Assembly: GCF_006345805.1 (NCBI RefSeq)
Contig: NW_021834295.1
Location: 1-52,830 of the forward strand
Origin: Octopus sinensis
Taxonomy: Eukaryota
Length of the DNA: 52,830 nucleotides
Direction of reading: 5' to 3'
Below are positions 13,529 through 48,625 of the stretch, in pieces. The stretch's first letter is position 1, and every line of letters starts with the position of its first letter. A model generated the notes under the pieces. It did not search any database. It was not told where the DNA came from and saw nothing but the letters and a program-made list of their open reading frames with translations. A program made the position numbers and the translations under genes.

Positions 13529-13560
<32 letters not shown>

Positions 13561-19882: not shown

Positions 19883-20100
19883 TTACAAAGAAATTCGATT
19901 GAATTCTGATGATAAACATTCAATTGCACTGAAACAGTCAGTTCTTTCAAGAGCTGCTTTTAATATTCGAAGTGTACGTTTCTCTGGGTCATTGCTTCGA
20001 CACCATTTGAGCAGCATCTGGAAACCTTGTTCCACAACGCTATGAGAATGGTCAAACTTGATGATTTCCAGGTCATGTTGTTTAATTCCTAATTCCCTTC
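19883..20100 (-). CDS. Exon 11, rest of death domain and stop
   Basis: tcttttgcag|GA AGG GAA TTA; [17 protein letters not shown]...[10 protein letters not shown]...LKAALE; TAA at 19885-19883. Confidence 0.9.
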
Positions 20101-23100
20101 CTGCAAAAGAAATAAGAAATAATTGCAACAGCATTAATGATAATATAAAATCTGTATTAATTACGACAAAGAAATTATGTGAATAGAAGAGTGAGAGATA
20201 CTTAAGAAACAGGGAAATTAGAAGACATTGTTATCTATTTCTAAAGATGTTGATAAAAATAGCAAAGAATTTGAAAAAAAGGCTGGAGAAGAAGAAGAAT
20301 ATTTTTAAAAATTAATTGAAAATTACACAAGAGAAAATGCCTGGTGAACAACTGGCAGAAGAAGTGTATGAGAGCCTAAAGAATCAACAAAGACCACCAA
20401 TAGTTAGATAATTTTATCCATCTGTCCATCTTCTCTGGGCTCTATTCATAGGAGAGTTTTAGGGGTAGAGTCTTCAGGCACCTCCTTCATGCAATTCTAT
20501 CAGAAGCAACCTTCATTAGAAGTTCTGAAAGGATTTCCAAACATGACCAATTGAAACTATGGATATCATCCAACCATCTCATTCTTGCTCTACCCCTAGG
20601 TCTCCTGTCGGTTGGCTCAGCTTGAAGAATCCTCTTGTGGTTCTTTCCTGTGACATTTTAATCACATGCCAGAGTACTGGAGCTGTGAATTCTCAATGCA
20701 GAGAAGCAGTCGCTTGACCTGGAGAGACCTCAAATCTCCAGCCTGCACACCTTGTTGAGTAACGTTACTCCAGAGACTCTTTGGGGGAATACAATCGCAG
20801 TCGTTTGATAACACCCTGTGATCAATGCCTGAAATAGTCATTTGTGATGTCTTTCCACCTATGATTAATAGAAATTTCAAAATTATCAACATTTAAAAAT
20901 ATTTCAAAAATAGGGATTGTGAACCTAAATGATTTCAACCACAGAAAGTAAAAATAAAATACTGTTAGGTAAATATCACATATTATAGAGGGCACTGGCT
21001 TAAGGTTTTTGGATTCATGACTTATAACAAGAACTTCTTTCACTGGATCAAGGCCACAATTTCAAAGTATTTAATACAGGAGAGGCCTTAGCAATGAGAA
21101 GAGTTTTAGTTTGTAGGCAATAAGACAAGAATCACCAACATCTACGCCATACACCTACAACACTTGGGTCCTGAAAGAATCACTGCATCCACAAACAAGC
21201 AAGTTTACAGGGAGGGCAGGTTAAGGTTAGGGAAGGACTTTGTAAGTAGCAGATATACAGGAATAGTTTGTAGTAGGAACAAGTAATAAAGACATAGTTG
21301 ATAGTTTCTGTTACCTAAGAGACAGAATTAGAAGTGGAGGAGACTATTCTGAAAGCACAGTAGTTAGAAGGAAAATGAGATGAAAAATGTACAGGGAGCT
21401 GTTAGGTCTACTGGCAACTAAGGGATTCTGTCTCCAAATGAAGGAGAGATTGCAATGTTACATGGAATGTGGAGGATGCGTGGAAACTGGCAGGAAATGA
21501 GATGAGCACACATCACTAAATGTGTAATGTTAATGTGTTGAAAATGTGGAGCCAAAAAACTGGGTCTCAGAAGAATCTGTGATAGTGTACAAGAAAAAAG
21601 ATAATGGTATAGATATAGAAGGGACATGGAGGATGAAATTTGGATAAAGAAATGCCTGGAAATCAAGTTGAAGGAAACAAGCGATCAAACTGGACAAAGG
21701 ACCACAACGACTCTGGGAGAAATCGTCTGACCATTACAAACTTAGAAAAATGGATGTAAGGTGATGATGATAATGGACCTGGTGTTAGTGGATTGATTTT
21801 TGCCCAGTATATGACTGGTACATTTTGTATGACTCCCCAAGATATAGCAAGCTGACAATGTTGTAGATGATGTCCATTCTTAATTTAGATAAGTCATTTC
21901 TGAGTGCGAACTTCCATGCTACATGGCAGTGAAACATGGGCCATGACTGCTGAGGACATGTTGGACATGAGAAGCATTAAACATGGTGTGCAAGAGAGAT
22001 GACTACGCTGGTATGGTCATGTGTTACGTATGGATGAGGACAACTGTGTGAAGAAGTGCCACTTCCTAACTGTAGAAGGAACCTGTAGAAGAGGTATATC
22101 CAGGAAGACATGGGATGAGATGATGAAGCATGGCCTTCGAACATTGGGCCTCACAGGGGCAATGACAGGAGACCAAGATTTGGGAAATATGCTGTGATTG
22201 AGAAAACCCGGCAACTAAAATGAGATCGTAGCCATGGCCAATGCCAGTGTTGTATGTCCGGCCCATTTAAGAGCACCCTCGATGCATTGGGTGATATGAT
22301 ATGCTTGAGAAGACCTGTTGAGTCAAGTAAAACCAAAATTGCAGCTGTGGCCAGTGCCCCCTGACTAGCCCTCGTTCTGGTGGCACATGAAAGCCATCAT
22401 CTGAATGTAGTCAATGCCAGTGTGATCTGACTGACTCCATGTGCTGGTGGCACGTAAAAAGGACCATCCAAATATGATCGATGCCAGGACCACCTGACTG
22501 ACTTCCATGCTGGCGGCACATAAAAAGCACCCACTACACACTCAGAGCGGTTGGCATTAGGAAGGGCATCCAGCTGTAGAAACACTACCAGATCAGATTG
22601 GAGCCTGGTGCAGCCATTGGCTCTCCAGACTTCAGTCAAACCGTCCAACTCATACCAGCATGGAAAATGGATGTCAAATGATGATGATGATGATTTATAT
22701 CAGCTGACTCAGAGGATATTATCATGATCTCTTGAGTCAAGTCTAGTCCCCAGTATAGCTCAAAAGTGCTTGAAAAGATGTTTCTCTATGCTGCAGTCTA
22801 TCTAGATGTATATAGGTACCATAGGGAGGTAGAAGACATTGCTGTAAATAATAGTATAAATGATATTTTATGTTGTTAAACTGTCAGACAAGGGGAAATG
22901 GGATATTGTGATGTTCATGCCTTTCCATGTGACATTTGTAATGTAAAGGAGAGTGAAATGATTTCAATTGAGAAACAAAATTGAGTTGAGTTTGAATTTT
23001 CTGTTGAGATTCTTTTTTTGTAATATAAGAGAGTGTTTCATTAACTTACAATGCTGAGTTCAATCCAGCCATGAACACAATCGACAATGGGGCCTGTCTT

Positions 23101-26100
23101 CTATAGAGACAGGAAATATATTTTGACCTGGGACTAAAGAATTACAATAAATATAGAAAAACACAGATTGGCCAGGGGAGAGACGACATGTCCCACACAA
23201 TGCACACTCTCATGTTAAAAAGTTTGCATTTGATAATGTGGTCCTCTTCACCCAAGAGAAAACATGATGGCACATCTGGAACCCTTTCCCCTTAATTCTG
23301 CCAGATTAAGGGAGATATCTGCCTCAACCTACCAGTAAAATTACTAAAAGTGTAAACAAGCAAAAACATTGTCATTAATTCACCTGTTTACTCTTAAATG
23401 ACAATATTTTTGAGTCCCCTTTTACAAATGACAGTATTAACTCTACTGGACCTTCTAATTTATACATTTTACAACCGTGCTGACGTCCGAAGATATTTTA
23501 TGAAATTTCAGTGATAGCTTTACTTTATAGCTAAACTTTCAATTGGAAATTAGGAATGGAACCGGTTCTCAGTCATTCAAACAAACAGAAGTTTAGCTGA
23601 AAGCAAAATTTATAGAAATTAATTGGGTATTTTATACTCACCAAGTTCCTGCCATTTACCTGCCAACTTTTGGGACACCCTATGAAGATGAATCTCCTCT
23701 ACCGTTACAGAATCTGAAATAAATATTTCCAAATTTTACACTTCATAGCACAATTTCCCTATCTCTGTTAATGGTTTATATTTTATTATTGTAAGACATT
23801 CCTATCATCAATGGACAACTGCTGACCACTATAGGTTTGGTTGATAGTTTTATACTTTCTACCGTGGTCTTATATAATGGCTCAATATTTAGGCCCATAA
23901 TAAAATAGACTGACCTTCCTAAGCCTCCTTTTTCTCTTAAGACATCCTACTTAATCTAACAATGTTGCAATCATCTTATTTAATGATCACATGTATCTCT
24001 TGTATCCATGCTAAACCTATGACATGGCATTGTCCCCTCACCACTGGACTTCACTAATCAACATTCCCCTCTTCTTTTGCTTAATTCTGATGTCAACCAA
24101 GCTGGTCATCAACGACCTTGACACAAACTCATGTCACAGCTGTTATCTTTGTCAAACTTTGCTGCTTTTAATCTTTAATTTTAAACTATGCAACTCAAAG
24201 TTCACCAGAATTTCATCTGATACAGGAAATATCTAAAGACACCTTAATGAAATAGTTTCCTTTCCTGATGAGCAATGATTAGTTCTACACAGGTAAAACA
24301 GAAAGTGATAACAAGTATCCTAAAACTGTATACTTGCACAAAACATCTTAAATGAAACACAAATGTTCATACACCGATTATTGCAAAGGAAAAATATCTG
24401 AAATGGTATATAAGAAATGATATTCAAGAATATATAATCAAGGTGGTGATATAGAAAACAATGAGATGAGAGAAAAGTGAATGTGTCTCATTATGGGGAG
24501 AGAATCGTTTCAGGATTTATATTTTATCTTTTTTTCTATATTTTCCTTATCGTGAGGGACCTTTTTCCTATGTCTCATGATTCCATATTTCGATAAAAAT
24601 CCCTTTATTGTATATTCTTGCATTTGTAGGTAGTGAATAGAATTAATTTTATCACTAACCATTTGAAAGAAATGTAAGAATGGAACCTGTTCTCAGTCAT
24701 TCACACAAATAATATATTTCAGGTGAAGGTAAAATTTATAGAAATTTATTACAGTTATTTTATACTCACCAACAGACTCTACAACCGCCTTGACTGCTTT
24801 CTCTTTACACTTTGGACACACTGAAATAAGAATTGGAAATTAAGAATGGAACCTGTTCTCAGACATTCACACAAATAATATATTTCAGGTGAAGGTAAAA
24901 TTTATAGAAATTTATTACTGTTATTTTATACTCACCAACAGACTCTACAACCGCCTGGACTGCTTTCTCTTCAGACTTTGGACACACTGAAAAAAGAATT
25001 GGAAATTAAGAATGGAACCTGTTCTCAGTCATTCACACAAATAATATATTTCAGGTGAAGGTAAAATTTATAGAAATCAATTACAGTTATTTTATACTCA
25101 CCAACAGACTCTACAACCGCCTGGACTGCTTTCTCTTCAGACTTTGGACACACTGAAAAAAGAATTGGAAATTAAGAATGGAACCTGTTCTCAGACATTC
25201 ACACAAATAATATATCTCAGGTGAAGGTAAAATTTATAGAAATTTATTACAGTTATTTTATACTCACCAACAGACTCTACAACCGCCTGGACTGCTTTCT
25301 CTTCAGACTTTGGACACTCTGAAATAAGAATTGGAAATTAAAAATGGAACCTGTTCTCAGACATTCACACAAATAATATATTTCAGGTGAAAGTAAAATT
25401 TATAGAAATCAATTACAGTTATTTTATACTCACCAACAGACTCTGCAACTGCCTGGGCTGCTTCTTCTTCAAACTTTGGACACACTGAAATAAGCATTTC
25501 AAAGTTTTATACTTCATAGTAAAATTTGTTTGTCTCTTTTAATAATCTATATTCCATTATTGTAAGGCATTCATATCCTCAATAGTCAATTGGTGACCAC
25601 TATGCTTTCGGTCAACACTTTCTAAGCTGTTACTATATAATAGTTCAATATTTAGAACCACAACAAAATAGGCAAACCTTTCTAAATCTCATCTTTCTCT
25701 TAAGACATCCTATATACTAATCTAACAATTCTGAAATTCTCTCACTTAGTAATCACTTCATAACACTCTTTTTCTCTTAGTTTTGTTGTTTCTTTCTTAT
25801 GTCTTTGCTAGACAAGTTTAACGCAAAATTTCACATTGGTTATTTGTTCCTGCCCATTAGAAAATTGCAGACTACAGCCTACAAATGACCACAAAAGCAC
25901 AAATTTCACAACTTTTGAAGTAAACGCAGTGGTGTCACCCAGCACACTGCCTCATGAAAGTCATTGCTAGCTCTCACTGTGCGCGCAACGGTGTGCTGCC
26001 ATCTGTTGGCATGCTACAGAACTAGTCCGTGAACTTTCTGATACTACCTTGGAGCAATGACCAGGCTTCATGTTCGAATTAAAACGAATCAACTCAAAAG

Positions 26101-29100
26101 TAAAGCCAAAAGGTGAAAGAGTCAGAAAACAATGTCTCTTTTAGCATTAATCACATCTAAAAACTAACGAGTGTGAGTATAAAATGTCTAAAAGGATGGC
26201 AAACATTATCATCATCATTTAGCGTCCGCTTTCCATGCTAGCATGGGTTGGACGGTTCAACTGGGTTCTGTGAAGCCAGAAGGCTGCATCAGGCCCAGTC
26301 TGATCTGGCAGTGTTTCTACGGCTGGATGCCCTTCCTAACGCCAACAACTCTGTGAGTGTAGTGGGTGCTTTTTACGTGCCACCGGCATGGGGGCCAGGC
26401 AAGGCTGGCAACGGCCTCGATCAGATGGTGCTTTTTATGTGCCACCGGCACGGAGGCCAGGCGAGGCTGGCAACGGCCACGAATGGATGGTGCTTTTTAC
26501 GTGCCACCGGCACGGAGGCCAGTCGGGGCGGCACTGGCAACGGCCACAATCGGATGGTTTGCTTACTTGTCACCGGCACTGGTATCACAGCTGCAATTTC
26601 CATTGATGTTGATCGACTTCGATTTTGGTTCTGCTTTCTGATATCTGATTTGATTTGGTTTGATTTTGATTTTGATTTTCACTTGCCTCAACGGGTCTTC
26701 ACAAGTGGAGTTTTGTGTCCCAAGAAGGAAAGGTATGTATAAGTCGACTGGCTACATACAAGGTAGAGGCCACGGGTTATGGTCTCACTAGTCTTGCTGG
26801 GCCTTCTCACGCACAGCATACTTCCACAGGTCTCGGTCTCTAGTCATTTCCTTGGTGAGACCTAAAGTTTGAAGGTCGTGCTTCACCACCTCGTCCCAGG
26901 TTTTCCTGGGTCTACCTCTTCCACAGGTTCCCTCAACCGCTAGGGTATGGCACTTTTGCACACAACTATCTTCAGCCATTCTCGTCACATGACCATACCA
27001 GCGCAAACGTCTCTCTTGCACACCACAACTGATGCTTCTTAGGTACAACATTTCTCTCAAGGTACTGACACTCTGTCGGGTATGAACACTGACATTACAC
27101 ATCCATAGGAGCATACTGGCTTCATTTCTTGCGAGCTTACGCATATCCTCAGCAGTCACGGCCCATGTTTCACTACCATGTAGCATGGCTGTTCGTACAC
27201 ATGCATCATACAGTCTGCCTTTTACTCTGAGCGAGAGGCCTTTTGTCACCAGCAGGGGTAAGAGCTTTCTGAACTTAACCCAGGCTATTTTTACTTTAGC
27301 AGTTACACTTTCAGCACACCCACCCCCGCTACTGACTTGGTCAACTAGGTAGCGGAAGCTATCCACTACTTCTAGTTTTTCTACCTGGAACGTGGTAGAA
27401 GTTAGTCTCTGCACATTTTCAGTGTTTATTGCTCCTGAGCATCTGCCACAAACAAAAACTATTTTCCTAGTTAGCCTTCCTTTGACATTGCTGCACCTCT
27501 TATGTGTCCATAGCTTACACTTGGTGCATCTTATAGAGTTTCTACCTACACCTTTTCTACAGATCAAGCAGGGCCATCTACCTGAAGGCGTTTGTGATTG
27601 GTCTACCTTCCTACTTATTAGGACTTTGGTTTTGGCTAGGTTGATTCTAAGGCCCTTCGATTCTAATCCTTGCTTCCACACCTGAAACTTCTCCTCCAGT
27701 TCTGATAGTGACTCAGCAATTAGAGCAAGGTCATCAGCATAGAGGAGCTCCCAGGGGCATCCTGTCTTGAATTCCTCCGTTATTGCCTGGAGGACTATGA
27801 TAAATAGGAGGGGACTAAGGACTGAACCTTGGTGGACCCCAACCTCTACCCTGAATTCTTCACTGTACTCGTTGCCAACCCTCACCTTACTAGCAGCATC
27901 TCTGTACATGGCTTGTACAGCTCTCACTAACCATTCATCTATCCCTAGTTTCCTCATTGACCACCAGATAAGGGATCGGGGGACCCTGTCGAAGGCTTTC
28001 TCCATGTCAACAAAAGCCAGGTACAGGGGCTTATCTTTAGCTAGGTATTTCTCCTGCAGCTGTCTTACCAGGAATACAGCATCAGTGGTACTTTTCCCTG
28101 GCACGAACCCAAACTGCATCTCATCTAAGCTAACTCTCTCTCTAATTAGTTGGGCTATAACCCTCTCCGTAACCTTCATTACCTGATCCAGCAGCTTGAT
28201 ACACCTGTAGTTATTTGTATCTAGGGCATCACCTTTACCTTTGTAGCAGTTGACTATTATGCTGCTACACCAGTCATTGGGTATGACTCCTTCGTGTATC
28301 ACCTGGTAAACTATACGGGTGACTAGGCTATAGCCGACACTACCAGATATTTTGAGCATCTCTGCAGTAATTTCTGATGGGCCTGGGGCTTTCCCTGTCT
28401 TCATGCTTGTAATTGCCTTAACTACTAAGGAACTGTCAACTCGGATTGCTGGTCCCCCTGTTGGGTTGACATTCGGCAGACTCTCTTTATCCCATTCATT
28501 TTCCTCATTCAGCAACCTTTCATAGTGGCGTCTCCAAACCTCTCTCTTTGCATCCTCATTTAGCGCAAGTGAACCGTCATCCTTTCGAACACATTTCTCT
28601 CCTACGACATCACGATTCTCTCTCACACACTGTCTTGCAACACGAAATACCTCAAGTCTTTCATTCTCATGGCGCAGAACATTGGAAAAGTTTTTTCTTA
28701 TCTGCTTCCCCTCTGGCTAAATACACCTGCCTCCTAGCTTCCCTTCTGGCAGTCTGATACACTTCCCTGCTACCACCGTTCTTCCAGTACTTCCAAGCCT
28801 GTTTCTTTTGTCTAATAGCCCTGTCAACAATATTTTTCCACCACCACGTTATTTTGGGTCTTGAGGGGACTTTGTACCAGCCACAGATCTGGTCAGTGGC
28901 TTTCAGCAGGTTGTCCCTTAAAAGCGTCCAGTTGTCTTCTACCCCATGTGAAGCTATACCCCCTTCTATTTCGTCAAAGACTTCAAGTAACATATCTCTA
29001 AATCTCTGTCCATTCGCAGTGTTAATCATATATAGTTACAAAGAAGGAGTTGCATGTCTCCACTACAATATGAAGTGCATTATTCCATACCAGAAAGTTA

Positions 29101-32100
29101 ATGAGACAACAGACAGATCAAGAAAGAATGTTCTTACCAAATCCACTTTTGCTGCGTATGTGTTGTCGACATATGGGGCATTGCTTAAATGTCATTTGAG
29201 AACAGCAATTCTGACAAATAACAGTATGTTGACATGGATGGAGTGTGACAGTAGCCTTTTTCTCTTGACAAAACCAACACCTGTGGAACAAAATATTAAC
29301 ACATCCCATCATTAACATTCATTTATAATAAAATATTTCGTTGTGGACATGTTTAGAGTACAGAATATTAAGGGGCACAACAGTAACCAACAAGAGTAAA
29401 TCGTAAATTCTTCTGTAAACAATTACATACAAGCAGATTTGTGTGTATACAAGTGTCACATTAACATACACATACAAGGGTGGGCTGAAAATATCAAAGG
29501 CTGACTAAGGTGCAGCCTTCCAACATGCCATCCCAGTCAAACAGTCCAACCCATGCCAGCATAGACAACAGACGTTAAATGATGATGATGATGATGACAT
29601 ACACATTGTTAGTGTGTGTTTTAGGTTATTTTCACATGAAAGCGTACATGACAACTGATTGAGTCAGAGAAGAGAGAGAGAGAAAAAAATTGTTGGTAGA
29701 CAGATAAATCCTATTTACTTCTAAATAGCAATTTCAAAATGTGTTCATTCACTTTATTATTTAGTACTACATTTTCATGGAGGTCACCGAACTCTAAAAT
29801 AGTCAGGGATGGATGGTGAGGTATATCTGTCAACACAAGCAATCATGTGAATGTCATCAAAATAGTGTTTTTCGTTTGATCCACTAACAACTGTATTTTC
29901 TGTTTATTGTTCTTATTATTGTTGTGTGGTCTTAAGGCTGCAAGCTGGCAGAATCATTAGCACACGGAGCAAAATGCTTTCTGGCATTTCGTCTGCCTTT
30001 ACATGCTGAGTTCAAATTCAGCTGCGGTTGACTTTACCTTGCTGTTGATAAAATAAGTACCAGTTGAAAACTGGGGCTGTTGTAATTGACTTATCCCCTC
30101 CCTGACCTTGCTGGCCTTGTGCCAGAATTGGAAATCATTATTGTTGTCTTGAGTCAAGACACTAATGACGGAATAATACATTGGGAGAATTCAAACTAAA
30201 TAAACATATAAACATGATTATATACAAAAGAGAAAATGTCCTGGTTTATCTTGGCGTTGCCAGTGAGTACTTACAGTGATTGTAAAAATGTTTTTAATTT
30301 TTCTTTCAAATGTTGATTTTCTATGCAGTCCAATGGGGTCACTTTCTTCTTCTTATTACGATGATATAAGCTGGCTCCTTGGCTGGCAAGGTAACTCAAA
30401 ACTACTATTCCAGAGAGCCTCCTATCCATGTCCAGTTGGAGCTCTCTGCAGCACTGCAAATGATGAAATATAAAACGATGAGTAGAATATTACACAAATA
30501 TATATTGTAGATAAACAAATCATGTCAAATGTAGGAAATATAATGGAACAAGTATCACAAATAACAGAACACAACAAACCAACAAGAACCTATCTTTACA
30601 ACTGGCTTGATAAAGCCAACTGGCCATAACAAAAGAAATACTTATGGAAGAGTATTGTATATATAAATATAACACAACAACATAACAACAAACAATGGCA
30701 AGCTACATTTTGTTACACAAAGGCCATTCTAATTACCATGGGGGTCGTCTGATGGTCTATGGTCACTCAAGATTTTCTGTAATTCCTTATGGAGATTTAA
30801 ACTGGTCGCAACAAGAAGTATTTTTTTAGCAACATATATACTCCTACTTGAATTTGTTTACCATCTGCAAAACTGCCATCAAAACTCAGATTTTTGACAT
30901 CTTCAGATCTGCATCTATGAAAGCAGTCACCCATATTTTCCTACTGGTAATTTCGATAATCCAAATATTGATTGGGAAACGTTTCACTGGTCACAAAGTG
31001 CAACTCATTTCCATAACAACAAACAATGAACAGAGAACACCAAGAACATAATAATTTCTTCAGACACAGCAACAAAACCAACACCAGACAGACATATCCA
31101 AGCATATCAATAATGTTTCCAAAATTTATAAAGAAACATTTTTGGCTGATGTTTGAAGTAAAGGAAGTAAGGATTGGTGTGGTGGTTGAGGCAACACACC
31201 AACACATTATAGTCAAGAAATTGTTGAAACTGTTAGTCTGATAGACAATTCCTATAATAATGGGTCGTTGACTGCTAGAGTAGCTTCTTCTCACCAAAGA
31301 AGACATTACAACAATACATAGGTGACCATTAACTGTCTGAAATACAGTCACACATATTTGGGAATCAAAGAGTTGCTTAAATTCTGCAACAACAGACAAT
31401 AGACACCATCAGATCTAGCAGTGGATAGATGCTGAGGTCTTTCAAACAAACACACACACACACACACATATGTATATATATATATATATATGCACCTAGA
31501 AGTAGTTGATAGCTACTGTTATCTAGGTAATCAAGTCAGTAGTGGAGGTGGATGTGCCAAGAGCATAGTTGCTAGAATAAGATTAAGCAGGGCAAAGTTC
31601 AGAGAGCTTCTATCTTTGTTGGTAACAAAGGGCCTCTATGACTATCTGTCTAGTTACATCGTCATACATACAATCTCGTGGCATTACAATTTTGTGCACA
31701 CATCTTAATGTAAATTCATTCTCATCACATCTCCCTTCATTACAATCATTGCAAGGGGTATTACTGTAGTCAATATACACACAAAGTCCAAGCCCTGGCA
31801 ATATTTGGAATCCTAATTATCAACTTTGAATAAACTCAGTTATATATTCATTATCATACTGATAAAAGAAACTTTCTTCGAAGTCCATGAATATATTTTC
31901 TTTAAATTTAATTGTCCATAAACGAATTTATTTTCCTTTTCCTTTCTTTGAAAATGATTAATGAAATATGCTTTCTAGCAATTAACACAGTTCAACTCGT
32001 TTAACTTGAAATTCGATATTTAAAACAGTTTGTGAATTTCTCTTTCTTAAATTTAAAGACTTATATCTGTCGTTGGTCACCTCTCCTTCATACAGTGATG

Positions 32101-34893: not shown

Positions 34894-34924
<31 letters not shown>

Positions 34925-35309: not shown

Positions 35310-35351
<42 letters not shown>

Positions 35352-36708: not shown

Positions 36709-36747
<39 letters not shown>

Positions 36748-36852
36748 TATATACATATATATATACATACACACACACACACACACATATATACATATAT
36801 ATATATACATACACACACACACACACACATATATACATATATATATATACAT

Positions 36853-36923
<71 letters not shown>

Positions 36924-38117: not shown

Positions 38118-38156
<39 letters not shown>

Positions 38157-41100
38157 AACATTTTATAATTATATACATAATTATAACACATGTACTGTGT
38201 TTTTCTCGGAGAATTAATGGTGGTAATAGTGTCTTTCGATGTCTATTTTTCAGTGCGTGGTGAGGAGCAAGCCAAGCCCTTGTTATAATTATGTATATAA
38301 TTATAAAATGTTTATAAAAATTTACTTATGAGGTTATATTTCCGCGCTGACCACTTGGTAAAAATCATTTCTGATTTTACCCTTTAATATCGCATCAAGT
38401 GGCTTCTAGCAGCAGAAGCCTGAACTTCAATGGCCTTGCCCTACAGAAACGTTTCCGGCCACTTTTGGGTACCCCCTCATATATTCGATATACTCTCTAC
38501 ATTATAGACCAACGATATATATACACACCTGAATAAACACGGCAATCTATATATGGTATGATGAACAACTGTTATATAGCCATGAAATTTAGGATGGGGA
38601 GAGGCATTAATGTGGATTATAAGGACCCCAGTACATGACTGGTATTGTACTTTATTAGCCTAGCAAAGATGGAAAGACAAGGTGACCTCAGCGGGATTTG
38701 AACTCTGAACATAAAGTGTGGTAAATAAATACCACAAGGTATTTTGCCCAACAGCAATCAGACACAAAAACAAGAGAAAAGAGGGAGGACAATTTATTAA
38801 ATGAACCCCTGGATATTACTGGTACAGATTTTCACTCCAGGTTGTTAATAAATACTCTGGCAGGATTTGAACTTGGAACATAAACAGATCAAACTAAACA
38901 CTTTAAGGGAATGATTCTGTATTTAGCCCAGGGTCAGAGGAAAGAGGAAAATTACAAGAGAGAGGGGGTGAGGTGTTTTATATGGAATGAAAAGAAGAAA
39001 AGGAAAGATTTGAACTTGTAACGTTGAGGTAACGAAGGATGAGATGAAGTAAAGAATCTAGTCAGGTAACAACAGCAACAATAATAATTATGATGATTAA
39101 TTAATGAAGTAGGTTACAGTGTCATTAGAGTGTGAGAGAGAGAGTTGAAGCACGACGTCCCATGGTGGGATTATGACATGAATGACTCAAAACAAGAAAA
39201 CAAACGTTAATGAAAACATTAAAGAAACAGATTTGGATAATCCAAATCCATTGGGGACTTACTTTTGAACTGCCAGATGGAGAGGAGTGTCACCATCATT
39301 GTCCGCTTTATTGGCATCGATGCCATTTTGTTGTAGGAGGAGTTTAGCTGTGTCTGTGTGTCCATTCTGACAGGCAAGATGGAGAGGTGTATGACCACTG
39401 TTGATCACCACCCTCACATCAGTGCCATTCTGTTGTAGGAGAAGTTTAGCTGTGTCTGTGTGTCCATTATACGAGGCAAGATGGAGAGGTGTATGACCAC
39501 TGTTGATCACCACCCTCACATCAGCGCCATCTTGTTGTAGGAGAAGTTTAGCTGTGTCTGTGTGTCCATAATACGAGGCAAGATGGAGAGGTGTATGACC
39601 ACTGTTGATCACCACCCTCACATCAGCGCCATCTTGTTGTAGGAGAAGTTTAGCTGTGTCTGTGTGTCCATTCTGACAGGCAAGATGTAGAGGTGTCCGA
39701 CCATCGTTGGTCACCACCCTCACATCAGTGCCATTCTGTTGTAGGAGGAGTTTAGCTGTGTCTGTGTGTCCATTATACGAGGCAAGATGGAGAGGTGTCC
39801 AACCATCGTTGATCACCACCCTCACATCAGCGCCATCTTGTTGTAGGAGGAGTTTAGCTGTGTCTGTGTGTCCATTATACGAGGCATGATGTAGAGGTGT
39901 CCAACCATCGTTGTCCACCACCCTCACATCAGTGCCATCTTGTTGTAGGAGAAGTTTAGCTGTGTCTGTGTGTCCATTGATAGAGGCAAGATGTAGAGGT
40001 GTCCAACCATCGTTGTCCACCACCCTCACATCAGTGCCATCTTGTTGTAGGAGAAGTTTAGCTGTGTCTGTGTGTCCATAATTAGAGGCAAGATGTAGAG
40101 GTGTCCAACCTTTAATATTTCGCTGAGTGACCTAAAAAAGATAAACAATAAAGACATTAAAGATGGCGTCAAGTGGATGGGGGGGGGCAGCGCAAAAATG
40201 AAAAATTTCAAAAAAAGAGAAAGAATCAGATTAATAAACAGGTGGAATGAATTTGGAGAGGAGTAAATAAATGAGGTTCATATCTTACCTGTACCCACAG
40301 ACACACACATATATATATATATACATATAAACACTCACACACATATATATATACACTCTCACGCAAGGAAATGAGCAACTTTCGAAAGAGTCCCCCCACC
40401 AATTTGTTTATTTAAAAAATTTTTTTGCCAAAAAACCCCGATTTCGGACACGGAGGTTCGGGAAAATTGCCAAAAAATCGGCAGTGGAATTTCCACCCCC
40501 TCCAAAATTCTTCAACTTTGACTTTTTTCCCCCAACACTAACCCTAACCCCAACTACAGAAATGTTTTGAAATTTTTGTCCGAATCATCATCTCCGTATT
40601 TTTCCGCATATTCTTAAAAAAAAATTGTGAAAAAAGTAAAGAATGAAGGAAATGGGGGTGGGGGTAATTTTAAAATGCCGATTTTTGCCAATTTTTACCA
40701 ATTTTTTTGCAGATTCGTATTTCCCTTAACCGAAAAGCGGGATTTGTGTCGGGGAAAAAAATTTAAAGAAAGGGTGGGTCTTTTTTAGGAAACGAAATTT
40801 GGGGCACTAAACTGTATGTATACATCATATACATATAACACACACATACATATATATACATATCTATATACACAAATATAATTGTATTCGCTAACCTGTA
40901 AAATGTTATTTCCTTTGCTACTTAACAGGACTTTGACTACATCTTCATAGTTCTTCCTCACAGCCAGATGTAGAGGTGTGTTGCCGTCTGAGTCCTGCTT
41001 ATTAACATTTGCTCCCCTGGAAACTAAGGAGGCCACTGCATCAATTTTACGGCTGAAAGGAAGAAAAAAACATAAAACATCACAGACATTCACTTAACAG

Positions 41101-41942: not shown

Positions 41943-42003
<61 letters not shown>

Positions 42004-42073
42004 TATATATATCACCGGATTATATCGCTAGTTGAAATGTCAAAGTCAATAATATTATATAGGTGTATATGTG

Positions 42074-42133
<60 letters not shown>

Positions 42134-42692
42134 TGTATGTGTATGTATGTATGTATATGTATATATATTTATGTATGTATAGAGAGAAAGACAGACAGAG
42201 AAATATGAGCCACTGAAATACGTATAATCGTTAATACACAGTAAACAAATGTGTACGTGTGTGTGTATACACATATTAATAGGTGAGGGTATAAAGTATA
42301 AATATTTTTATCCCAGCGAGTGTACAATACAAACAAGGATTAAGTACCGTTGTAGTATCTACATATTTGGTATACATTGAAAATATATTGTAATCCTTTT
42401 GCGAAAGATGGAATGTCTGAAAATTATAGACAAACTAATTGATAGCAGATTTCTCATCAATCTAAAAAAACAACAACAACAACAGCACGTCGTAATTGGC
42501 GGGAAAACTACGTCTGCAAATGTAATGTTGTCATAGCAACAGACTATGCAAGGGAAAGTTTGTTGTTAAGGGCAACGAGACGTATTTTTACCGCCAAAAG
42601 AAACAGTGACCAACAAGGAAGTATGGCGGTCATATAACACACATAAATGAATATATAAACACACCCATATTTATTATATATGTGTGTGTGTG

Positions 42693-42723
<31 letters not shown>

Positions 42724-45700
42724 ATAAGTTAAACTCCAGTGTTTGACCCGAGCAAAAAAAAATAGTGCAATAGGTATAAAATAAAATGTAGTAAACGAAT
42801 ATGTAAAAAAAATACGTTGGCGAATGAGGGGTGGTGGAGACGACTCGGAAAATTCACACGATCAATCTCACAGGATCCGAAAACTCAACGTTTTAACATC
42901 GTTTACTACATGTTGTTTTACACCTATTACACTTTTTGTTTTCATTTTTGGGACCGGTTGTCGAGTGGGGTTACCGGATCGTGTGAATCATCCGAGTCCG
43001 CACCCCACCCACTCGCCCCGTCACAAAAATTGAACAAAAGTAGAGTACCGGGTGTAAAATAATGTGTAAAAAACGAAAATAAAGAACAAAAAATTCGCCG
43101 ACGAATGGGGAAGCGGTGAGATTTTAATTTTCCGAGTCGTCTCCCCACCTCCTGTTCGCCATATTTTTTTTTCGATTGACGCAGGAGTGGCTGTGTGGTA
43201 AGTAGCTTGCTTACCAACCACATGGTTCCGGGTTCAGTCCCACTATACTATAGCCTCGGGCCAACCAAATCCTTATGAGTGGATTTGGTAGACGGAAACT
43301 GTAAGAAGCCCGTCGTATATATGTATATATATATGTGTGCGTGTGTGTTTGTGTGTCTGTGTTTGTTCCCCTAGCATTGCTTGACAACCGATGCTGGTGT
43401 GTTCATATCCCCGTCACTTAGCGGTTCAGCAAAAGAGACTGATAGAATAAGTACTGGGCTTACAAAGAATAAGTCCTGGGGTCGAGTTGCTCGATTAAAG
43501 GCGGTGCTCCAGCATGGCCGCAGTCAAATGACTGAAACAAGTAAAAGAGTAAGAGTATTCGTTTACTACATGTTGTTTCACACCTATTGCACTATTTTTT
43601 CCTTTTTTCTTTGCTTGGGCCAAACACAAGATTTTAACCTAGTGTTTCCCTCCTCTGTCTTCTCCATCTGAAGGAGCCATGTCCCGCTTCTAATGCAAGA
43701 CACCTTTCTCTCCAGCAATATTAGCTCCCCCACCCCACCACCTCAACCAGTCGAGAGGTCTTTGTCTCGCAATTAATTGGTGACCTCACTGGTTCGGATG
43801 GCATGTAAAAGGCATCCAGTACACTCTGCAAAGTGGTTGGTGTTAGGAAGGTCGTCCAGCCATAGAAACCAAACCTAAGCAGACAGTAGTGTTTGGTGTG
43901 GTCTTCTGACTTGTCTGTTCCTATCAAACCCTCCTACCCATGCCAGCATGGAAAAGGAACATTGATGACGATGATGTGTGTGTGTGTGTGTTTGTGCAAA
44001 ATTCTGGAACAATTTGTGACTGCAGAAGCTATAGAAACTAACAAGAACTTCAAACATGTTTTATTGTCCAGAGATGACCTTATGAAGCACAATTCAAAAT
44101 ATAATAGATCTCAAAATGTGTTGAGTGAGTTGCAGATGGAGGTGAGAAATAATTTCTGTAAGAAATTTACAGATTATTTACTGCCAAAACAAGCTAGAGA
44201 ATCTTTCTTGTTGCTTTAGATCTCAAATAACATTTTCTTTGGAGAAAAATTGATCGATCTCTCCATAATCAATATGAAGAGAAGACACTGAATCACACTG
44301 GGTCAATTTTAAGAACTGTTGGCTCTCAAAGAATATCTCCAAAACAAAAATAATCTGTTTTGACAACAAATAACGAAAAAGATTTTTGTGATCCAATGAA
44401 GGGGATTCATGGAGAAAATGAGAAAAAGATGTTATTTGGTTACTACTATCATGCTGTTATCGTGTCACACTGCCACTATTATGGTATCTTTGGATATTCA
44501 AATAGTCTGGAATTGCAAAAAATTTCAAAACAAAAGCAGATCTCAAGATTTTAGTTAATTCAAGTCTTACCTTTTCACAGCATAATGTAAAGCTGTGCGA
44601 CCTTTTTCGTCACTCATGTCCATATTGGCTCCAGATTCTATCAAGAAGGCTATTAGACTTGTGCTGCCCTGTTCACAAGCTGCCATTAAGAAAGTTTTAC
44701 TGTCTGAATTTATTTGGTTGACCTGAAGAGAAGAAAGAAAAGATATATAAAATATATCAAAGGAGAGAGAGAGATAGAGAGATAGGAGGGAAGAATAGAG
44801 AGAGAGAGAAAGGAGAGAAGAAAGAGAAGTAAAGAAGAAGATGCTGGAGTGAAAGAAAGGGATATGAAAGACAAAGAAAGAAGATACACACACACACACA
44901 CACACACACACAGTGCAACATGAAATAAAATGTCTTGCTGAAGAATACAACACACAGCCCAGACTGGGAATCAAACTCACTATCTCCTGATTGTGAACCT
45001 GTTGCCCTAACCATTGAGCCATTCACCTTCATATACATATACACACATACATACACACACACATATGTATGTATTTATGTATGTATGTATGTACGGGTGG
45101 AGGAACTCTCGAGAGTCAACGGCCATCCAATAAATGTCTTTAGGTTGTATCATGCACGGGAACATAGAAATAATCGGACTGAATACCCGATCGCGCGGTT
45201 AAACCATTGGGAGTGAAGGACTCCTAGCCTTTGTTAGGGCATCCTTCTAGGCGAAGGTAACTCAGGTAACTGGGATAACTCCGGCATAAAACCTGCAGCT
45301 CAGTGGTTACCGATGATGTTGACTTGTTCTTCTTTTCGGATTATGGCTGCTGTTGCTTAGTGAGTGGGATTGACTCAGTGCACAGCCTTTCCTTACTTAA
45401 ATAAAATCTTCTTGCACAGGCATTGCACGATAACAACATTGATTAAGCTTCGTACAATGGCCATACTCGATAACGAGGGGGCAGCCACCATATATATGTA
45501 TGTATGTATGTATAGTTCCAGTCATTCAAGTCCCACCACTGGTCTAAGTACAGTAAAGCTACAACTTCAAATTCTCACAAACATTTAACTTAGACATTGT
45601 TACCTAATTAGATTACTATATCCATACTTTGTTATATATATACTGATATGTATGCATGTATGTATGTATAGGATGACTCACGAGTCATCTTCGTAGTCAT

Positions 45701-48625
45701 AAAGCGAGACAGATGAGTGACAACCTGGCCACTGGTGGTGGTGTAACACACCATACTAATCATATCTGTCGGGCATGTGGAAGAGAGTGTAATTCGGCAG
45801 GAGGACTTAAACGACATGCAAAGGTACATGAAGCCCAGTTACAAATACAGCCGGCTTTTTACCGGTAAAGGTTTTAGTTGCCAATTTTGTACAAGACATT
45901 GTAGATCTTTAGCTGGGCTAAAAAGTCACATTCGATCACAGCATCAATAACAGTTAAGTTTCGTGCAATGGCCATACTCGATAACGAGGGGGCAGCCATC
46001 ATGTATAGGTTGTGTCTCCAATCTGGTATGCTCATTTTGTCCAGAATGCCAATCTACTGGAAGCTGTCCATAGATGTACAACCATAAAATTAGCCTCACT
46101 CAATCACTTATCATTTCTTAAATGTATTGCTTCTCCATGCATCGACAGAGAATTTTGTCATTTCTAGCAACTCACTTGATCCCACAAGATTATCCCTCAT
46201 CTTTCAACAACAACTTTGACCACTTCTGGAATTTAATATCTTTACCACTCTCAGACATGCTTATAAAATAAAAAAACAAAGCCATTCCAGTTTCCATGGT
46301 ATCGGAAACAAATATTTTATGCTCAGAATTGTCAGGGTACGGAATAAACTATCTACATTGGTTGTTTGCAGTCAGAACACTGTAACCTTCAAAAACACCA
46401 CACTTTCTGTAATTCAGAAACACTGGTTCCTATGCACCCTTTCCTTTTTATGGTTCTTTTACTGCTCCCTTTTCTGTCTTTTAGTGTTCTATCCCATGTA
46501 CGATGGCATGCACTTTAGATGGTCATTGGTGTCTTTCTTTACATGACTTGTACTTTCTGTATTTTCATAGAAGTGGACAGAGCAATATCGAGGGAAATCA
46601 GTACAAATATACCGTTTCATGGTAGATGGAAGAGTCTTTCTTATGAAACATAAGATGTCTGTCTTAGTAACAACCTCACTTTTGTCCGGCTGAAGAGGGA
46701 AAAAAATCAGTTGAGAAAATATCCCAGTTTATTACTGGTATGTATGATATCAATTATGAATTGAAGAGAACACTGACAAGATTTCAAACGTGGTATCTGA
46801 TAGGAGACACACAGGTAAATAAGAGAAACCATATAAACAATGCAACTGTAGGGATTAGGCCATAAGATGGTGTATAAAGTAACTGAAAAGGGGAAGAGCT
46901 ATAAAGGGTCAAAACCTCAGAAATAATTGTGTAGATTCTGAATATATCAGACTGGATTTTAGTTTAGTATTCCCTGGTAAAGCTCATGAAATTCTACACT
47001 TTGTTATCACTGATGTCTGGCATAGTAGCACTTTCATTTCATGCTATAATGATGAAAGAGGTTTAAGAAATGGTGAGAGAAGAACAGGATGTTTGAAATG
47101 AAGCATGGATCTTCAGATGTCATATGTCTGGTGAAACAGCAATGTGGGATCTACTTGGAAAAGAATGAAAGCAAATCTACAAGAAAGGTGTAGAGCACAG
47201 GTAAATCAAGGTGTAACAGGTAAACAGGTAAATAAAGATTGTTTAGTTCATGCATAAGCTCAAGGAAAAGATTGATAATCTATTTATGTTAGTCACTGAA
47301 TCTATTACAAAGTAATTACTTGTAATTAGACATCTGTGACATCTTTGGAACGACACCAATCACAACTAAATATGAGCAACTATGGAAAGGTAGACACAAA
47401 TGAAAAGAACAATGAGAAAATAAGAAATATTATGAAAGTAGTGATCAGAATTTTGAGCCTAAATGCGGCAGCAGTATCAGGGCTTACATTAGTTTGTAGC
47501 CATACAATATTTAAAAAGGTGTGAGTGGTTCATACACAACTGTATTACAGCTGTACAAACAACACTATCGACTCCACCTTGAGGAAAACACCTACCCTCA
47601 CTAACTGGCAGACATTCACCCACCATTGAAATACATGTATGATGGTCATCAAGAAAATAAAGGATGTTTTTTTCTGCATTTCACACCATTTGTCAGCTAT
47701 CTTTCCCTTCCAAATTAAAAGCCTCATTTTCTGGTCTCTTACCAAGAGTATCTCTATAGATTTTACAGAATCATTCCACCCACCACTCCCTAACCATGAT
47801 GGTTCTCTGATCCAAACACAACTACACATTGAGTTTCATATATTTGTACCACCACAGCCGCCTTGACTCCCTGGTCCTTATAAAATTTTCCACAATCCCT
47901 ACCCAATGGTAGTACTACTCTATTAGAGAAGCCCTGTTTTATAATTTTTGCTGATAGTGTCCTATCTGCTGACTACCAGCCAGTCATTCTAACTTCCAAT
48001 ATTTCAATTATGAAGTAAAAAGTCATAAACAACCATTATCTTTGTCCCTTTGGGTATCTTTTTCTATTCAAAGAGCACCAGTACAGTTCCATAAAGCCAG
48101 TTCAAGCAGGGGTCTGATTCCTACGTGACTCCCCAGTGTTTTGGTTATGTTTGACAACTTCTGCAAAAGAAATAGTGTAGCCCTTGACATCGGTAAAACC
48201 TTCAACTGTGTATGGCAAGAGAATTTCTTGACAAAGTCACCATTTATCTATAGGATCCATCTGTCCCCCATCTCTTGGACTGAATATTTCCTGCCAGAAT
48301 ATTCCATTGCAGTGTGTGAGGATGGGTTTCTCTCTCACTGACATTCCATCAATTCTGGCATACCTCATTGTCTGGTTGAATATTTATAAAAAGTGACAAT
48401 GATGAGGATTAGAGGAAAGAGGTAAAGAAAGATATGAAATATTATGGACAAATATATCTGGTTATTTAGGAACATTTAATATTGTGTATAAAATAATAAA
48501 CAAACATTCAACATTGAAGAAGCAATATAAAGTAAACTTACTGTTTCAGGATTTTCTTTGATAAATCGTTTCACATCTTCAAAGTTCCCAGTCAGAATCT
48601 TGCTTATAATCTTATTTACATCCAT
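19883..48625 (-). CDS. Multi-exon gene: ankyrin repeats (~15) - RING (C3HC4) - optional 17-aa linker cassettes - death domain; mind bomb-like E3 ligase derivative
   Basis: Hand-built model, minus strand: 48625-48542, 44722-44571, 41052-40896, 40131-39263, 37676-37640, 32581-32369, 30453-30275, 29280-29138, [25484-25434, 25318-25268, 25152-25102, 24986-24936, 24820-24770], 23713-23642, 20100-19883. All introns are GT-AG and phases chain 0,2,0,2,0,0,2,1,(1x5),1 into one open frame: 792 aa with all cassettes, 707 aa with none. The last ankyrin with an insertion, followed by a RING, resembles MIB1/MIB2 (recalled, not searched). Confidence 0.85.
20480..20810 (-). mobile_element. Degenerate RTE-like LINE C-terminal fragment
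   Basis: [14 protein letters not shown]... resembles the 'QLRxxGHxxRM' segment; many stops. Confidence 0.4.
21905..22695 (+). mobile_element. RTE LINE 3' fragment
   Basis: [26 protein letters not shown]...KTWDEMMKH followed by RTE 3' UTR and (GAT)n tail. Confidence 0.85.
23642..23713 (-). CDS. Exon 10, first part of death domain ([24 protein letters not shown])
   Basis: tttatttcag| 72 nt |gtgagt; phase 1 to 1; joins the next exon as KWQELGRELGI, the death-domain helix-2 signature. Confidence 0.85.
24770..24820 (-). CDS. Cassette exon 9e ([17 protein letters not shown])
   Basis: ttcttatttcag| 51 nt |gtgagt; phase 1 to 1. Confidence 0.6.
24936..24986 (-). CDS. Cassette exon 9d ([17 protein letters not shown])
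   Basis: ttcttttttcag| 51 nt |gtgagt; exon sequence identical to 9c. Confidence 0.6.
25102..25152 (-). CDS. Cassette exon 9c ([17 protein letters not shown])
   Basis: ttcttttttcag| 51 nt |gtgagt; phase 1 to 1. Confidence 0.6.
25268..25318 (-). CDS. Cassette exon 9b ([17 protein letters not shown])
   Basis: ttcttatttcag| 51 nt |gtgagt; phase 1 to 1. Confidence 0.6.
25434..25484 (-). CDS. Cassette exon 9a ([17 protein letters not shown])
   Basis: ttatttcag| 51 nt |gtgagt; phase 1 to 1, no stop. Confidence 0.65.
26208..29020 (-). mobile_element. 5'-truncated RTE-clade LINE with long RT ORF (26788-28626)
   Basis: 612-aa ORF with [28 protein letters not shown] and YADD motifs plus a Cys-rich finger; upstream frameshifted piece 28667-29020; 3' UTR and (GAT)n tail near 26208. 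Confidence 0.95.
29138..29280 (-). CDS. Exon 8, C3HC4 RING finger (MIB/IAP-like)
   Basis: ttccacag|G TGT ... TTT G|gtaaga; CWFC-x11-CQH-x3-CQNC-x8-CPICR; 143 nt, phase 2 to 1. Confidence 0.9.
29935..30137 (+). mobile_element. Degenerate tRNA-derived SINE
   Basis: gagctggcagaa-like head, B box GAGTTCAAATTC, tail aagtaccagt...ggccttgtgcc. Confidence 0.6.
30275..30453 (-). CDS. Exon 7, end of last ankyrin and C-cap (CCRELQLD...[24 protein letters not shown]...)
   Basis: tttgcag|TGC ... CT|gtaagt; 179 nt, phase 0 to 2; resembles the MIB-type terminal ankyrin with insertion. Confidence 0.85.
31490..31635 (+). mobile_element. RTE LINE internal fragment
   Basis: [28 protein letters not shown]...LLVTKGL matches the 26788-28626 ORF. 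Confidence 0.85.
32369..32581 (-). CDS. Exon 6, ankyrin repeats ([20 protein letters not shown]...GNNCLHLS...PILDE)
   Basis: ttccacaaag|GAT ... GAG|gtaagt; 213 nt, phase 0 to 0. Confidence 0.9.
32954..33466 (+). mobile_element. tRNA-derived SINE with locally duplicated head (heads at 32954 and 33174)
   Basis: caggagtggct...ggttcagtcccactg...gtggatttggtagac; same family as 34931-35309 and 43180-43556. Confidence 0.8.
33758..34235 (-). mobile_element. RTE 3' UTR/tail with five internal ~63-bp repeats
   Basis: Homologous to 26208-26600; gtgcc(a/c) units at 33924, 33986, 34051, 34114, 34180. Confidence 0.8.
34275..34644 (-). mobile_element. Non-autonomous Helitron-like element
   Basis: Reverse complement of 51364-51749; TC start, hairpin, CTAG end. 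Confidence 0.8.
34931..35309 (-). mobile_element. Full-length tRNA-derived SINE
   Basis: Head cgcaggagtggctgtgtggtaag, B-box-like GGTTCAGTCCC, tail (GAGTAAAA)n. Confidence 0.85.
35440..35985 (+). mobile_element. RTE LINE AP-endonuclease fragment
   Basis: [15 protein letters not shown]...CCIQE...[10 protein letters not shown]...AGDFNGHVG; frameshifts and stops. Confidence 0.85.
35995..36178 (-). mobile_element. Second RTE endonuclease fragment, inverted
   Basis: Minus strand ...[10 protein letters not shown]...[20 protein letters not shown] (frameshifted). Confidence 0.7.
37090..37345 (-). mobile_element. tRNA-derived SINE-like element
   Basis: Minus strand AGTGGTTAA...GATTCGAGTTCAG B-box-like; (ATT)n inside. 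Confidence 0.5.
37640..37676 (-). CDS. Exon 5, 37-nt exon completing an ankyrin ([13 protein letters not shown])
   Basis: Long pyrimidine tract ...aactttcag|G ... CAG|gttagt; phase 2 to 0; supplies exactly the missing helix 2 of [10 protein letters not shown]. Confidence 0.8.
39263..40131 (-). CDS. Exon 4, tandem array of 8 complete plus 1 partial 34-aa ankyrin repeats
   Basis: ctttttag|GTC ACT CAG ... CAA AA|gtaagt; 869 nt open, phase 0 to 2; 102-bp period; [34 protein letters not shown]. Confidence 0.95.
39292..40107 (-). repeat. 8 x 102-bp coding tandem repeat
   Basis: Invariant core GGACACACAGACACAGCTAAA in every unit. Confidence 0.95.
40896..41052 (-). CDS. Exon 3, ankyrin repeats ([31 protein letters not shown]...NNILQ)
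   Basis: cctttcag|C ... CAG|gttag; 157 nt, phase 2 to 0; GANVN and GNTPLHLA motifs. Confidence 0.9.
41230..41900. mobile_element. MITE with TIRs and TA target duplication (Tc1/mariner-like)
   Basis: Perfect 20-bp inverted core CCCCCGACGAATTTGTTTCC (41242-41261 / 41870-41889), extending imperfectly to CACAA termini, each flanked by TA. Confidence 0.75.
43180..43556 (+). mobile_element. tRNA-derived SINE (same family as 34931-35309), small internal deletion
   Basis: Direct homology. Confidence 0.85.
43780..43975 (+). mobile_element. RTE 3' tail fragment
   Basis: ggttggtgttaggaagg...cccatgccagcatggaaa...gatgacgatgatg. Confidence 0.7.
44571..44722 (-). CDS. Exon 2, ankyrin repeats ([19 protein letters not shown]...[10 protein letters not shown])
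   Basis: ttctcttcag|GTC ... AAG|gtaaga; 152 nt, phase 0 to 2; ankyrin motifs FLMAA..G and GRTALHYAV. Confidence 0.9.
45740..45998 (+). mobile_element. LINE 3' end encoding two C2H2 zinc fingers (frameshifted)
   Basis: [21 protein letters not shown] and [22 protein letters not shown]; 3' motif aatggccatactcgataacgagggggcagcca is also present at about 45457-45488. Confidence 0.6.
47650..48380 (+). mobile_element. Degenerate L2/CR1/Jockey-like LINE RT fragment
   Basis: [13 protein letters not shown] (RT motif 3-like) and [18 protein letters not shown]. Confidence 0.6.
48542..48625 (-). CDS. Coding exon 1 ([28 protein letters not shown]), N-cap-like degenerate ankyrin
   Basis: Acceptor ttttcattcaaaag|AC-ATG (exon starts at 48627); donor ACA|gtaagt; 84 nt, phase 0; joins the next exon in frame. 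The true start could lie further upstream. Confidence 0.7.

Follow-up and report, generated by a model that had tools for sequence, protein, structure and literature searches.

An Ankyrin-RING-Death Domain Gene of Octopus sinensis with a Variable Ankyrin Array, from a Multi-Copy Family Found in Octopus

A 52,830-nt stretch of the Octopus sinensis genome (RefSeq assembly GCF_006345805.1, contig NW_021834295.1, positions 1 to 52,830 of the forward strand; hereafter the window, whose numbering is used throughout unless another locus is named) carries on its minus strand a gene whose predicted product joins ankyrin (ANK) repeats, a single RING finger and a C-terminal death domain (DD). Sequence comparison identifies the gene as a new and unusually amplified member of a family that is undescribed and so far found in Octopus only. 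The units of its tandem ankyrin array differ from each other, and from those of the sister species Octopus vulgaris, almost solely at canonical target-contacting positions. The reading that we favor, with moderate confidence, is that the gene encodes a recognition-coupled E3 ligase and death-fold adaptor, belonging to a rapidly diversifying birth-and-death family. The protein would most plausibly serve innate immunity or regulated cell death.

Little is known about innate immunity in cephalopods. Expansions of death-fold proteins in single lineages are known chiefly from marine invertebrates that are sessile or live in herds, and a survey of such expansions, including those of TRADD-N, found cephalopods poor in TRADD-N and makes no mention of an ANK-RING-DD architecture (PMC8195603). 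A large family, seen in Octopus only, in which a diversifying ankyrin surface is coupled to a RING and a DD would offer a candidate, open to test, for variable recognition inside the cells of a highly motile mollusc.

Gene Model and Domain Architecture

The exons were mapped by placing Octopus homologs on the window by tblastn and then reading the splice sites. The gene extends from an ATG at 48625 to a TAA stop at 19885-19883. These ends are exactly those proposed by the first-pass annotation, and its phase-consistent ANK-RING-DD model stands: all splice sites are AG acceptors or GT donors, their phases are compatible, there are no internal stops, Pfam detects the ankyrins, and its RING and Death matches exceed their cut-offs. 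The product has 707 residues without, and 792 residues with, five optional 51-nt mini-exons. By these measures the gene is real and apparently intact. No annotated protein in the databases matches it exactly, and no exon matches at 100% apart from an alternative first exon described below.

The first exon, e0 (48542-48625; phase 0 donor, GT at 48541-48540), provides the start codon and an N-terminal capping ankyrin helix pair. It is 78% identical to the N-terminus of P0154, a full-length O. vulgaris paralog, also matches the N-terminus of the full-length paralog P0152, and is conserved in the O. vulgaris ortholog (locus L001). An alternative 5' coding exon, e1 (46613-46651), has in-frame stops upstream and matches the first 14 residues of the O. 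vulgaris product P0018 at 100%. Repeat 1 and part of repeat 2 are encoded by e2 (44571-44722), which was located by tblastn with P0016 and P0018 and has a Pfam Ank match and AG/GT borders; e3 (40896-41052; tblastn, Pfam Ank 9e-12, splice sites) carries repeats 2 and 3. Then comes e4 (39263-40131), with the tandem array of eight 34-residue (102-nt) units and the start of the next repeat, as detected by Tandem Repeats Finder (TRF) and by Pfam Ank_2 (6e-130). The 37-nt exon e5 (37640-37676; tblastn with P0015, tttcag acceptor and GT donor) completes ankyrin 12 and restores the frame between e4 and e6 (32369-32581), where ankyrin 13 and part of 14 are found (98.6% identical to P0001; Pfam Ank). 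The atypical last ankyrin repeats or C-terminal cap, together with a pre-RING helix, are assigned to e7 (30275-30453), which is 96.6% identical to products of O. sinensis LOC115225502 and gave no Pfam match when scanned alone. In the spliced 792-residue product Pfam Ank matches at 2.5e-118 in 12 stretches, and by eye an N-terminal cap and about 15 ankyrin repeats can be recognized, in agreement with the first-pass count of about 15 ankyrins, one RING and a C-terminal DD.

The single RING, of the C3HC4 type and the IAP/MIB/IDOL class, is encoded by e8 (29138-29280; zf-C3HC4_3, 1e-11), which ends in phase 1. In the 792-residue product it scores 40.4 bits (cut-off 27) at residues 563-607, directly after the last ankyrin and ahead of the linker and DD. 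Its ligand spacing is C-x2-C-x11-C-x-H-x3-C-x2-C-x8-C-x2-C, and all eight zinc ligands align with those of cIAP1, as do its CPICR, which places an Arg after the last Cys, and its CWFC, with a hydrophobic residue after the first Cys (CPICR and CKVC in cIAP1). The Arg after the last Cys is the E2~ubiquitin "linchpin" position, and the hydrophobic residue after the first Cys is an E2 contact. The nearest solved structures are cIAP1/2, IDOL/MYLIP, CGRRF1 and XIAP in a PDB sequence search with ANK14-15 and the RING, with cIAP1/cIAP2 as the top match (E = 1.5e-8), and IDOL, cIAP1/2 and XIAP by Foldseek.

Between the RING and the DD lie five tandem 166-nt units (24669-25498; TRF period 166, 5.0 copies, 95% matches), each containing one 51-nt phase 1-1 mini-exon with canonical splice sites: m0 (25484-25434), m1 (25318-25268), m2 (25152-25102), m3 (24986-24936) and m4 (24820-24770). 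Each mini-exon encodes a 17-residue linker repeat. Paralog proteins contain from one to six such repeats (P0001, P0003, P0008, P0154), and the O. vulgaris ortholog has six of the 166-nt units versus five in the window. Since e8 ends in phase 1 and all later exons are phase 1, the frame is kept however many linker repeats are spliced in, and likewise when the DD is. This symmetry fits the many RefSeq isoforms, as read from the exon phases, and it would also fit exon shuffling as the route by which the DD was acquired. In some paralogs every 17-residue repeat carries a CPxC motif, with four consecutive units in P0154 (residues about 370-470). CPKC is kept in one of the five window units, m4. Zinc knuckles formed by paired CPxC units were considered and are not claimed: four such units are consecutive in P0154, and there is just one in the window gene.

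The DD is split across e9 (23642-23713, phase 1-1; tblastn with P0010, 96%) and e10 (19883-20100; Pfam Death; 92% identical to P0001), which ends with the stop codon. It scores 32.3 bits in the full product and 35.8 bits when e9 and e10 are scanned by themselves, covering profile positions 3-79 of 86 (Pfam PF00531, cut-off 22.6). Because of this split over two phase-1 exons the profile passes its cut-off only when e9 is joined; unspliced e10 scores 22.4 bits, just under it. Among solved structures, the closest in sequence are the DDs of ankyrin-3 (E = 3e-5), TNFR1, RIPK1, ankyrin-1 and CRADD. AlphaFold2 was used to model P0001, the O. sinensis relative to whose final DD exon e10 is 92% identical. 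The DD of this model is a six-helix bundle with a predicted local distance difference test score of 84-94, and Foldseek superimposes it on the DDs of RIPK1, ankyrin-G and TNFR1 with a target-normalised TM-score of 0.74-0.82 and a root-mean-square deviation of 1.5-2.4 Å (TRADD, about 0.7). Judged through this relative, the window gene is predicted to have the six-helix DD fold. A shallow alignment makes the same model poor in its ankyrin part. Some 250 nt beyond the stop lies a motif-only candidate polyadenylation signal (19631-19636, minus strand; scan for AATAAA/ATTAAA).

In the window gene the junction between RING and DD is drawn from the RefSeq models of paralogs and from the phase-1 symmetry of the exons. 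The first-pass annotation had raised the prospect of transcripts that end after the RING with the DD exons left unjoined, and among related genes both outcomes occur: RefSeq models join RING to DD (P0001, P0010, P0152, P0154), and there are also isoforms ending after the RING or after a mini-exon (P0009). These shorter isoforms, and the roughly 9 kb with a retrotransposon that separate the RING exon from the DD exons, are what one would expect if the model were a chimera whose DD exons belong to a separate downstream gene. Yet the exons agree in strand, order and phase 1, RING and DD are connected at the same junctions in many RefSeq products from three species (P0253 in addition to the four above), and the retrotransposon does not occur in the ortholog. 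We consider a chimera exceedingly unlikely.

The Ankyrin Array Varies at Target-Contacting Positions

The repeat in e4 has a period of 102 with 7.7 copies and 93% matches (TRF, 39321-40110). Units 1-7 (238 residues) are on average 86.1% identical (range 79-94%), as opposed to 25% for the other ankyrins of the same protein. The array has eight units in the window, nine in the O. vulgaris ortholog and two to four in annotated paralogs, where the units have diverged (at most 79% alike). The proposal that one ankyrin unit has been amplified into a variable array, made in the first-pass annotation, is well supported by these comparisons, all the more since the variation falls on binding positions, as follows.

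Variation was compared between two genomes, that of the window and that of O. vulgaris, which together provide 17 units. In these, 24 of the 34 residues are invariant, and in 20 of the 34 codons not a single nucleotide differs. Residues change at repeat positions 1, 2, 3, 5, 10, 12, 13, 14, 26a and 28, the most diverse being 5 (W/R/H/S/C), 13 (N/I/Y/Q/R) and 3 (D/S/A/Y). Libraries of designed ankyrin repeat proteins (DARPins) randomise positions 2, 3, 5, 13, 14 and 33, a pattern that can be seen in the DARPin alignments. Five of these six positions vary in the octopus units, compared with 5 of the 28 others (Fisher test on the counts, p = 0.0047). The array would be a natural example of the DARPin design principle, in which an invariant framework carries variable contact residues.

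The units have also turned over between the two species. Only the terminal unit forms a cross-species orthologous pair, and it does so at background divergence (5 differences in 102). For most interior units the closest unit is one of the same species (V2 equals V3, V5 and V6 differ at two sites, and W1 and W2 at three), which means that units have undergone duplication or conversion since the lineages split.

The first-pass annotation compared the gene with the repeat arrays of fungal NLRs, and the comparison holds. The ANK, TPR and WD arrays of those proteins are defined by "high internal conservation", with repeats more than 85% identical over at least 100 residues (Dyrka et al. 2014, PMC4986451), and the window array, with its mean of 86.1% over 238 residues, is of this kind. 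Shared features further include a repeat number that is polymorphic or differs between close relatives, reshuffled units, and an inner helix and beta-hairpin that carry the hypervariable sites of the ANK fold (PMC4986451). In contrast to the fungal proteins, the octopus gene lacks a NACHT or NB-ARC module, has a RING and a DD as its outputs, and is an animal gene with introns. As far as this comparison goes, the likeness is one of evolutionary regime and not of homology.

The Family in Octopus

A word-indexed search with an ANK14-RING-DD profile retrieved 104 protein clusters at E ≤ 1e-3 and two more, both Octopus ANK proteins, at E ≤ 10. All 106 are from O. sinensis, O. vulgaris or O. bimaculoides. 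An exhaustive search of representative sequences gave three further full-length matches, which were also from Octopus, and its end-to-end matches were Octopus family members only. Distant relatives can escape a word-indexed search, and giant ankyrin proteins flooded the exhaustive one on account of the several ANK columns retained in its profile, so that the restriction to Octopus is observed rather than proven. Family loci are spread over about ten O. vulgaris chromosomes or scaffolds and many O. sinensis scaffolds; at least five of the genes form a 1.4-Mb cluster at 28.36-29.74 Mb of O. vulgaris OX597842.1.

Full-length members of all three species have in common the layout of N-terminal cap, ANK, RING, linker and C-terminal region (P0154, 563 residues; P0152, 505 residues; P0253, 563 residues). 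Pfam Death was confirmed in P0154 and P0152; P0253 gave no Pfam Death match, and by eye its C-terminal region resembles the family DD. In the source databases the proteins go by names such as MIB1-like, MIB2-like, ankyrin-3-like and secG-like, and a literature search (octopus death-domain, ankyrin, MIB2 and expanded families) found no paper describing the family.

The window gene, then, is not unique, being one of a large multi-copy family already present in public annotation. Nor is it a widespread single-copy conserved gene with an invariant array, the finding against which the first-pass annotation had set its proposal: copies are many and the array differs between species. The statement that this particular gene gained a DD has to be revised. 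Across three Octopus species the DD is a trait of the family as a whole, which places its gain before the window gene.

These family data bear on a different reading of the same domains, namely a housekeeping-type regulator of death-domain signalling in which the DD docks the ligase on an endogenous DD complex, the ankyrins bind a conserved substrate of the host for ubiquitination by the RING, in the manner of cIAP or Pellino, and no variable targets are sensed. In the cIAPs, too, a RING of this class occurs together with a death-fold domain, and it is with their RING that the octopus one aligns best. A conserved substrate, however, would predict neither the turnover of units between sister species nor a variation focused on binding positions, and more than 100 paralog clusters in one genus would be unexpected. 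We regard such a regulator as unlikely.

Proposed Mode of Action

In the recognition-coupled ligase and adaptor that we favor, the protein would be cytosolic and arranged as an ankyrin solenoid, a RING, a repeat linker and a DD. The concave face of the solenoid would bind a fast-changing target, either a protein of a pathogen or mobile element or a rapidly evolving protein of the host, and the RING would recruit E2~ubiquitin. The DD could bring the protein into death-domain assemblies of the MyD88/IRAK or TNFR/FADD/RIPK type. Alternatively, the DD may oligomerise the protein, bringing RINGs together and switching ubiquitination on. The optional 17-residue mini-exon repeats would set the spacing between RING and DD. 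A bolder and more tentative idea, which we think doubtful at present, is that octopuses have germline-encoded, DARPin-like intracellular binders whose units are amplified, reshuffled and diversified at their contacts, with binding wired to a RING and a DD; they would be an animal counterpart of the variable-repeat receptors of fungi and plants without the NOD module.

Relation to Mind Bomb and Other Known Proteins

Pfam scans of the 692- and 792-residue products found no MIB_HERC2, ZZ or Mib-repeat (REP), no NACHT or NB-ARC NTPase, and no ZU5 or UPA. These results bear first of all on the suggestion of the first-pass annotation that the gene derives from mind bomb (MIB) and has lost the MIB recognition module. 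The MZM (MIB/HERC2-ZZ-MIB/HERC2) and REP modules of MIB1/MIB2 are indeed absent, but "lost" presumes an ancestry that was not demonstrated. Upstream of e0 the minus-strand frames contain no ankyrin, RING or other recognizable coding sequence by eye or by tblastn with the family, a region in which no Pfam scan was made. The links to MIB are the ankyrin block followed directly by a zf-C3HC4_3 RING, which MIB1/MIB2 share, and the automated MIB1/2-like names of many family members. RING1 of MIB1 may also resemble the window RING. No MIB protein was retrieved in the profile searches, which returned Octopus members only, or in the PDB search with ANK14-15 and the RING. The MIB1 ANK structure 8v0e appeared as a generic ANK match, which disappeared once the canonical repeats were left out of the query.

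A true MIB paralog, a MIB1/2-like protein of Notch-ligand endocytosis stripped of its N-terminal modules, would account for the ANK-RING order and for the names of the relatives. Against it stand the absent modules in an open reading frame (ORF) that starts at the ANK cap, one internal RING followed by a C-terminal DD in place of two or three RINGs with the last at the C-terminus, the failure to retrieve any MIB protein, and a multi-copy family restricted to one genus where MIB1/MIB2 are conserved and single-copy. We hold this reading to be very improbable. By the defining features of MIB, as far as they can be read from sequence, the gene is not a member of that family, and MIB descent, while possible, is not shown. 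Even if the family turned out to be genomic churn, the "mind bomb-like" label, which implied a Notch-pathway function without support here, would be corrected.

By sequence, the closest solved relatives of the RING are cIAP1/cIAP2 (BIR-CARD-RING), which have a RING of this class and a death-fold domain in one chain. The cIAPs act inside death-domain receptor complexes. They differ from the window gene in that recognition is by BIR and not by ankyrins, the CARD precedes the RING, and the RING is C-terminal. Ankyrin repeats with a C-terminal DD are shared with ankyrins 1-3, ANKDD1A/B, DAPK1 and NF-kB p100/p105. The ZU5-UPA, kinase and Rel homology domains found among these proteins are missing from the window gene, which carries a RING. 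The best solved sequence match of the DD is that of ankyrin-3, and ankyrin-G is among its structural matches; since the DDs of TNFR1 and RIPK1 match about equally, the likeness to ankyrins does not settle the origin of the DD. An ANK-RING architecture is also shared with the plant XB3/XBAT ligases. XB3 acts in immune receptor signalling. The plant ligases have no DD, and from the window gene there is only a weak Pfam match to RING_XB3-XBAT31 (15.5 bits, cut-off 50), so that the likeness is probably convergent.

Divergence from the O. vulgaris Ortholog

The window is colinear with O. vulgaris OX597842.1 at 29.58-29.62 Mb (locus L001), with 95-96% nucleotide identity including introns, and on these grounds we treat L001 as the orthologous locus of a very closely related species. 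Between the two, the RING exon is conserved (pN, the proportion of nonsynonymous differences, 0.017). The first DD exon has a pN of 0.137 and a synonymous proportion (pS) of 0.035, and the DD exons show 10-11% nucleotide divergence versus about 4.5% in introns. The best protein match also changes from exon to exon, being P0001 for e6 and e10, LOC115225502 of O. sinensis for e7 and e8, and P0010/P0172 for e9. Together, the mosaic affinities and the divergence of the DD exons suggest gene conversion or exon exchange among paralogs.

A 2.2-kb segment that holds e1 (44770-46955) is missing from the ortholog. It is 91% identical in the paralog locus L005 and partly present in L003, and is therefore considered to have been deleted in the ortholog. 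Within this segment, on the plus strand of the window (45713-45950), two short ORFs have weak C2H2 zinc-finger matches.

Several points weigh against the reading that we favor. The ortholog (L001, 14641-15610 and 9966-10116) contains two frame-breaking 1-nt deletions, one in e2 (GACAGTAAAAC to GACAGAAAAC) and one in array unit 8, where an A-run is one base shorter. They could be assembly errors or real decay and, taken with the loss of the e1 segment, they mean that this lineage of the family may be decaying. In the six exons that align cleanly (e3, e5, e6, e8, e9 and e10), the pN/pS ratio relative to the ortholog is roughly 0.7, which is near-neutral; the overall value of 0.79 is inflated by the ungapped alignment of e2 and e7, each of which has an indel. 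The hypervariable pattern of the array could come from past selection on a few founder units that were copied later. IAP-class RINGs are normally C-terminal and dimerise through their tails, and the window RING is internal. Finally, relatives outside Octopus may exist, given that the search was word-indexed.

The frameshifts and deletion of the ortholog and the near-neutral ratio would be understandable if the window gene were a non-functional or dying paralog, its open frame reflecting recent history and its array variation the product of neutral slippage and gene conversion. The young retrotransposon in its intron and the lack of an annotated protein that matches it exactly point the same way. 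However, the frame is open over 707-792 codons in 10-15 exons with every splice site canonical, and the eight repeat units contain no stop. Changes cluster at binding positions while the 20 codons mentioned above remain nucleotide-identical in all 17 units, and the RING exon is conserved. These observations make a dying paralog improbable in our view, and a diversifying recognition gene remains the reading that we prefer.

The RefSeq isoform P0022 bypasses both L001 deletions by means of a GTGAGG site that lies in array unit 1. The same GATGTGAGG motif is also found in array units 1-7 of the window gene, where it could be a cryptic donor.

Other Features of the Window

A 2.8-kb insertion (26209-29018), not present in the O. 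vulgaris ortholog, lies in the intron that separates the RING exon from the mini-exons. It includes an intact reverse-transcriptase ORF of 612 residues (26788-28626) on the minus strand, the orientation of the gene, with an RVT_1 match at 2e-32 and a weak PHD/C1-like zinc finger. The insertion looks like a young non-LTR retrotransposon copy.

Otherwise the window is AT-rich, microsatellite-laden animal DNA, and the homologs found for its coding parts all come from Octopus. A (TATG)n microsatellite of about 1100 copies extends over 4.5 kb (9296-13757), with shorter ones at 3-382, 2776-3858 and 6071-6461, and these (TATG)n tracts give rise to long spurious ORFs in several frames. Downstream of the gene, a 231-bp unit occurs twice at 96% identity in a non-coding region (14952-15411). 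Copies of a 62-65-nt tandem motif (GGTGCTTTTTACGTGCCACCGGCACGG...) are found on both strands in introns and flanks (26365-26522 and 33913-34200), and similar sequence occurs at 22397-22648 and 50181-50429; the tandem copies are probably part of a dispersed repeat family.

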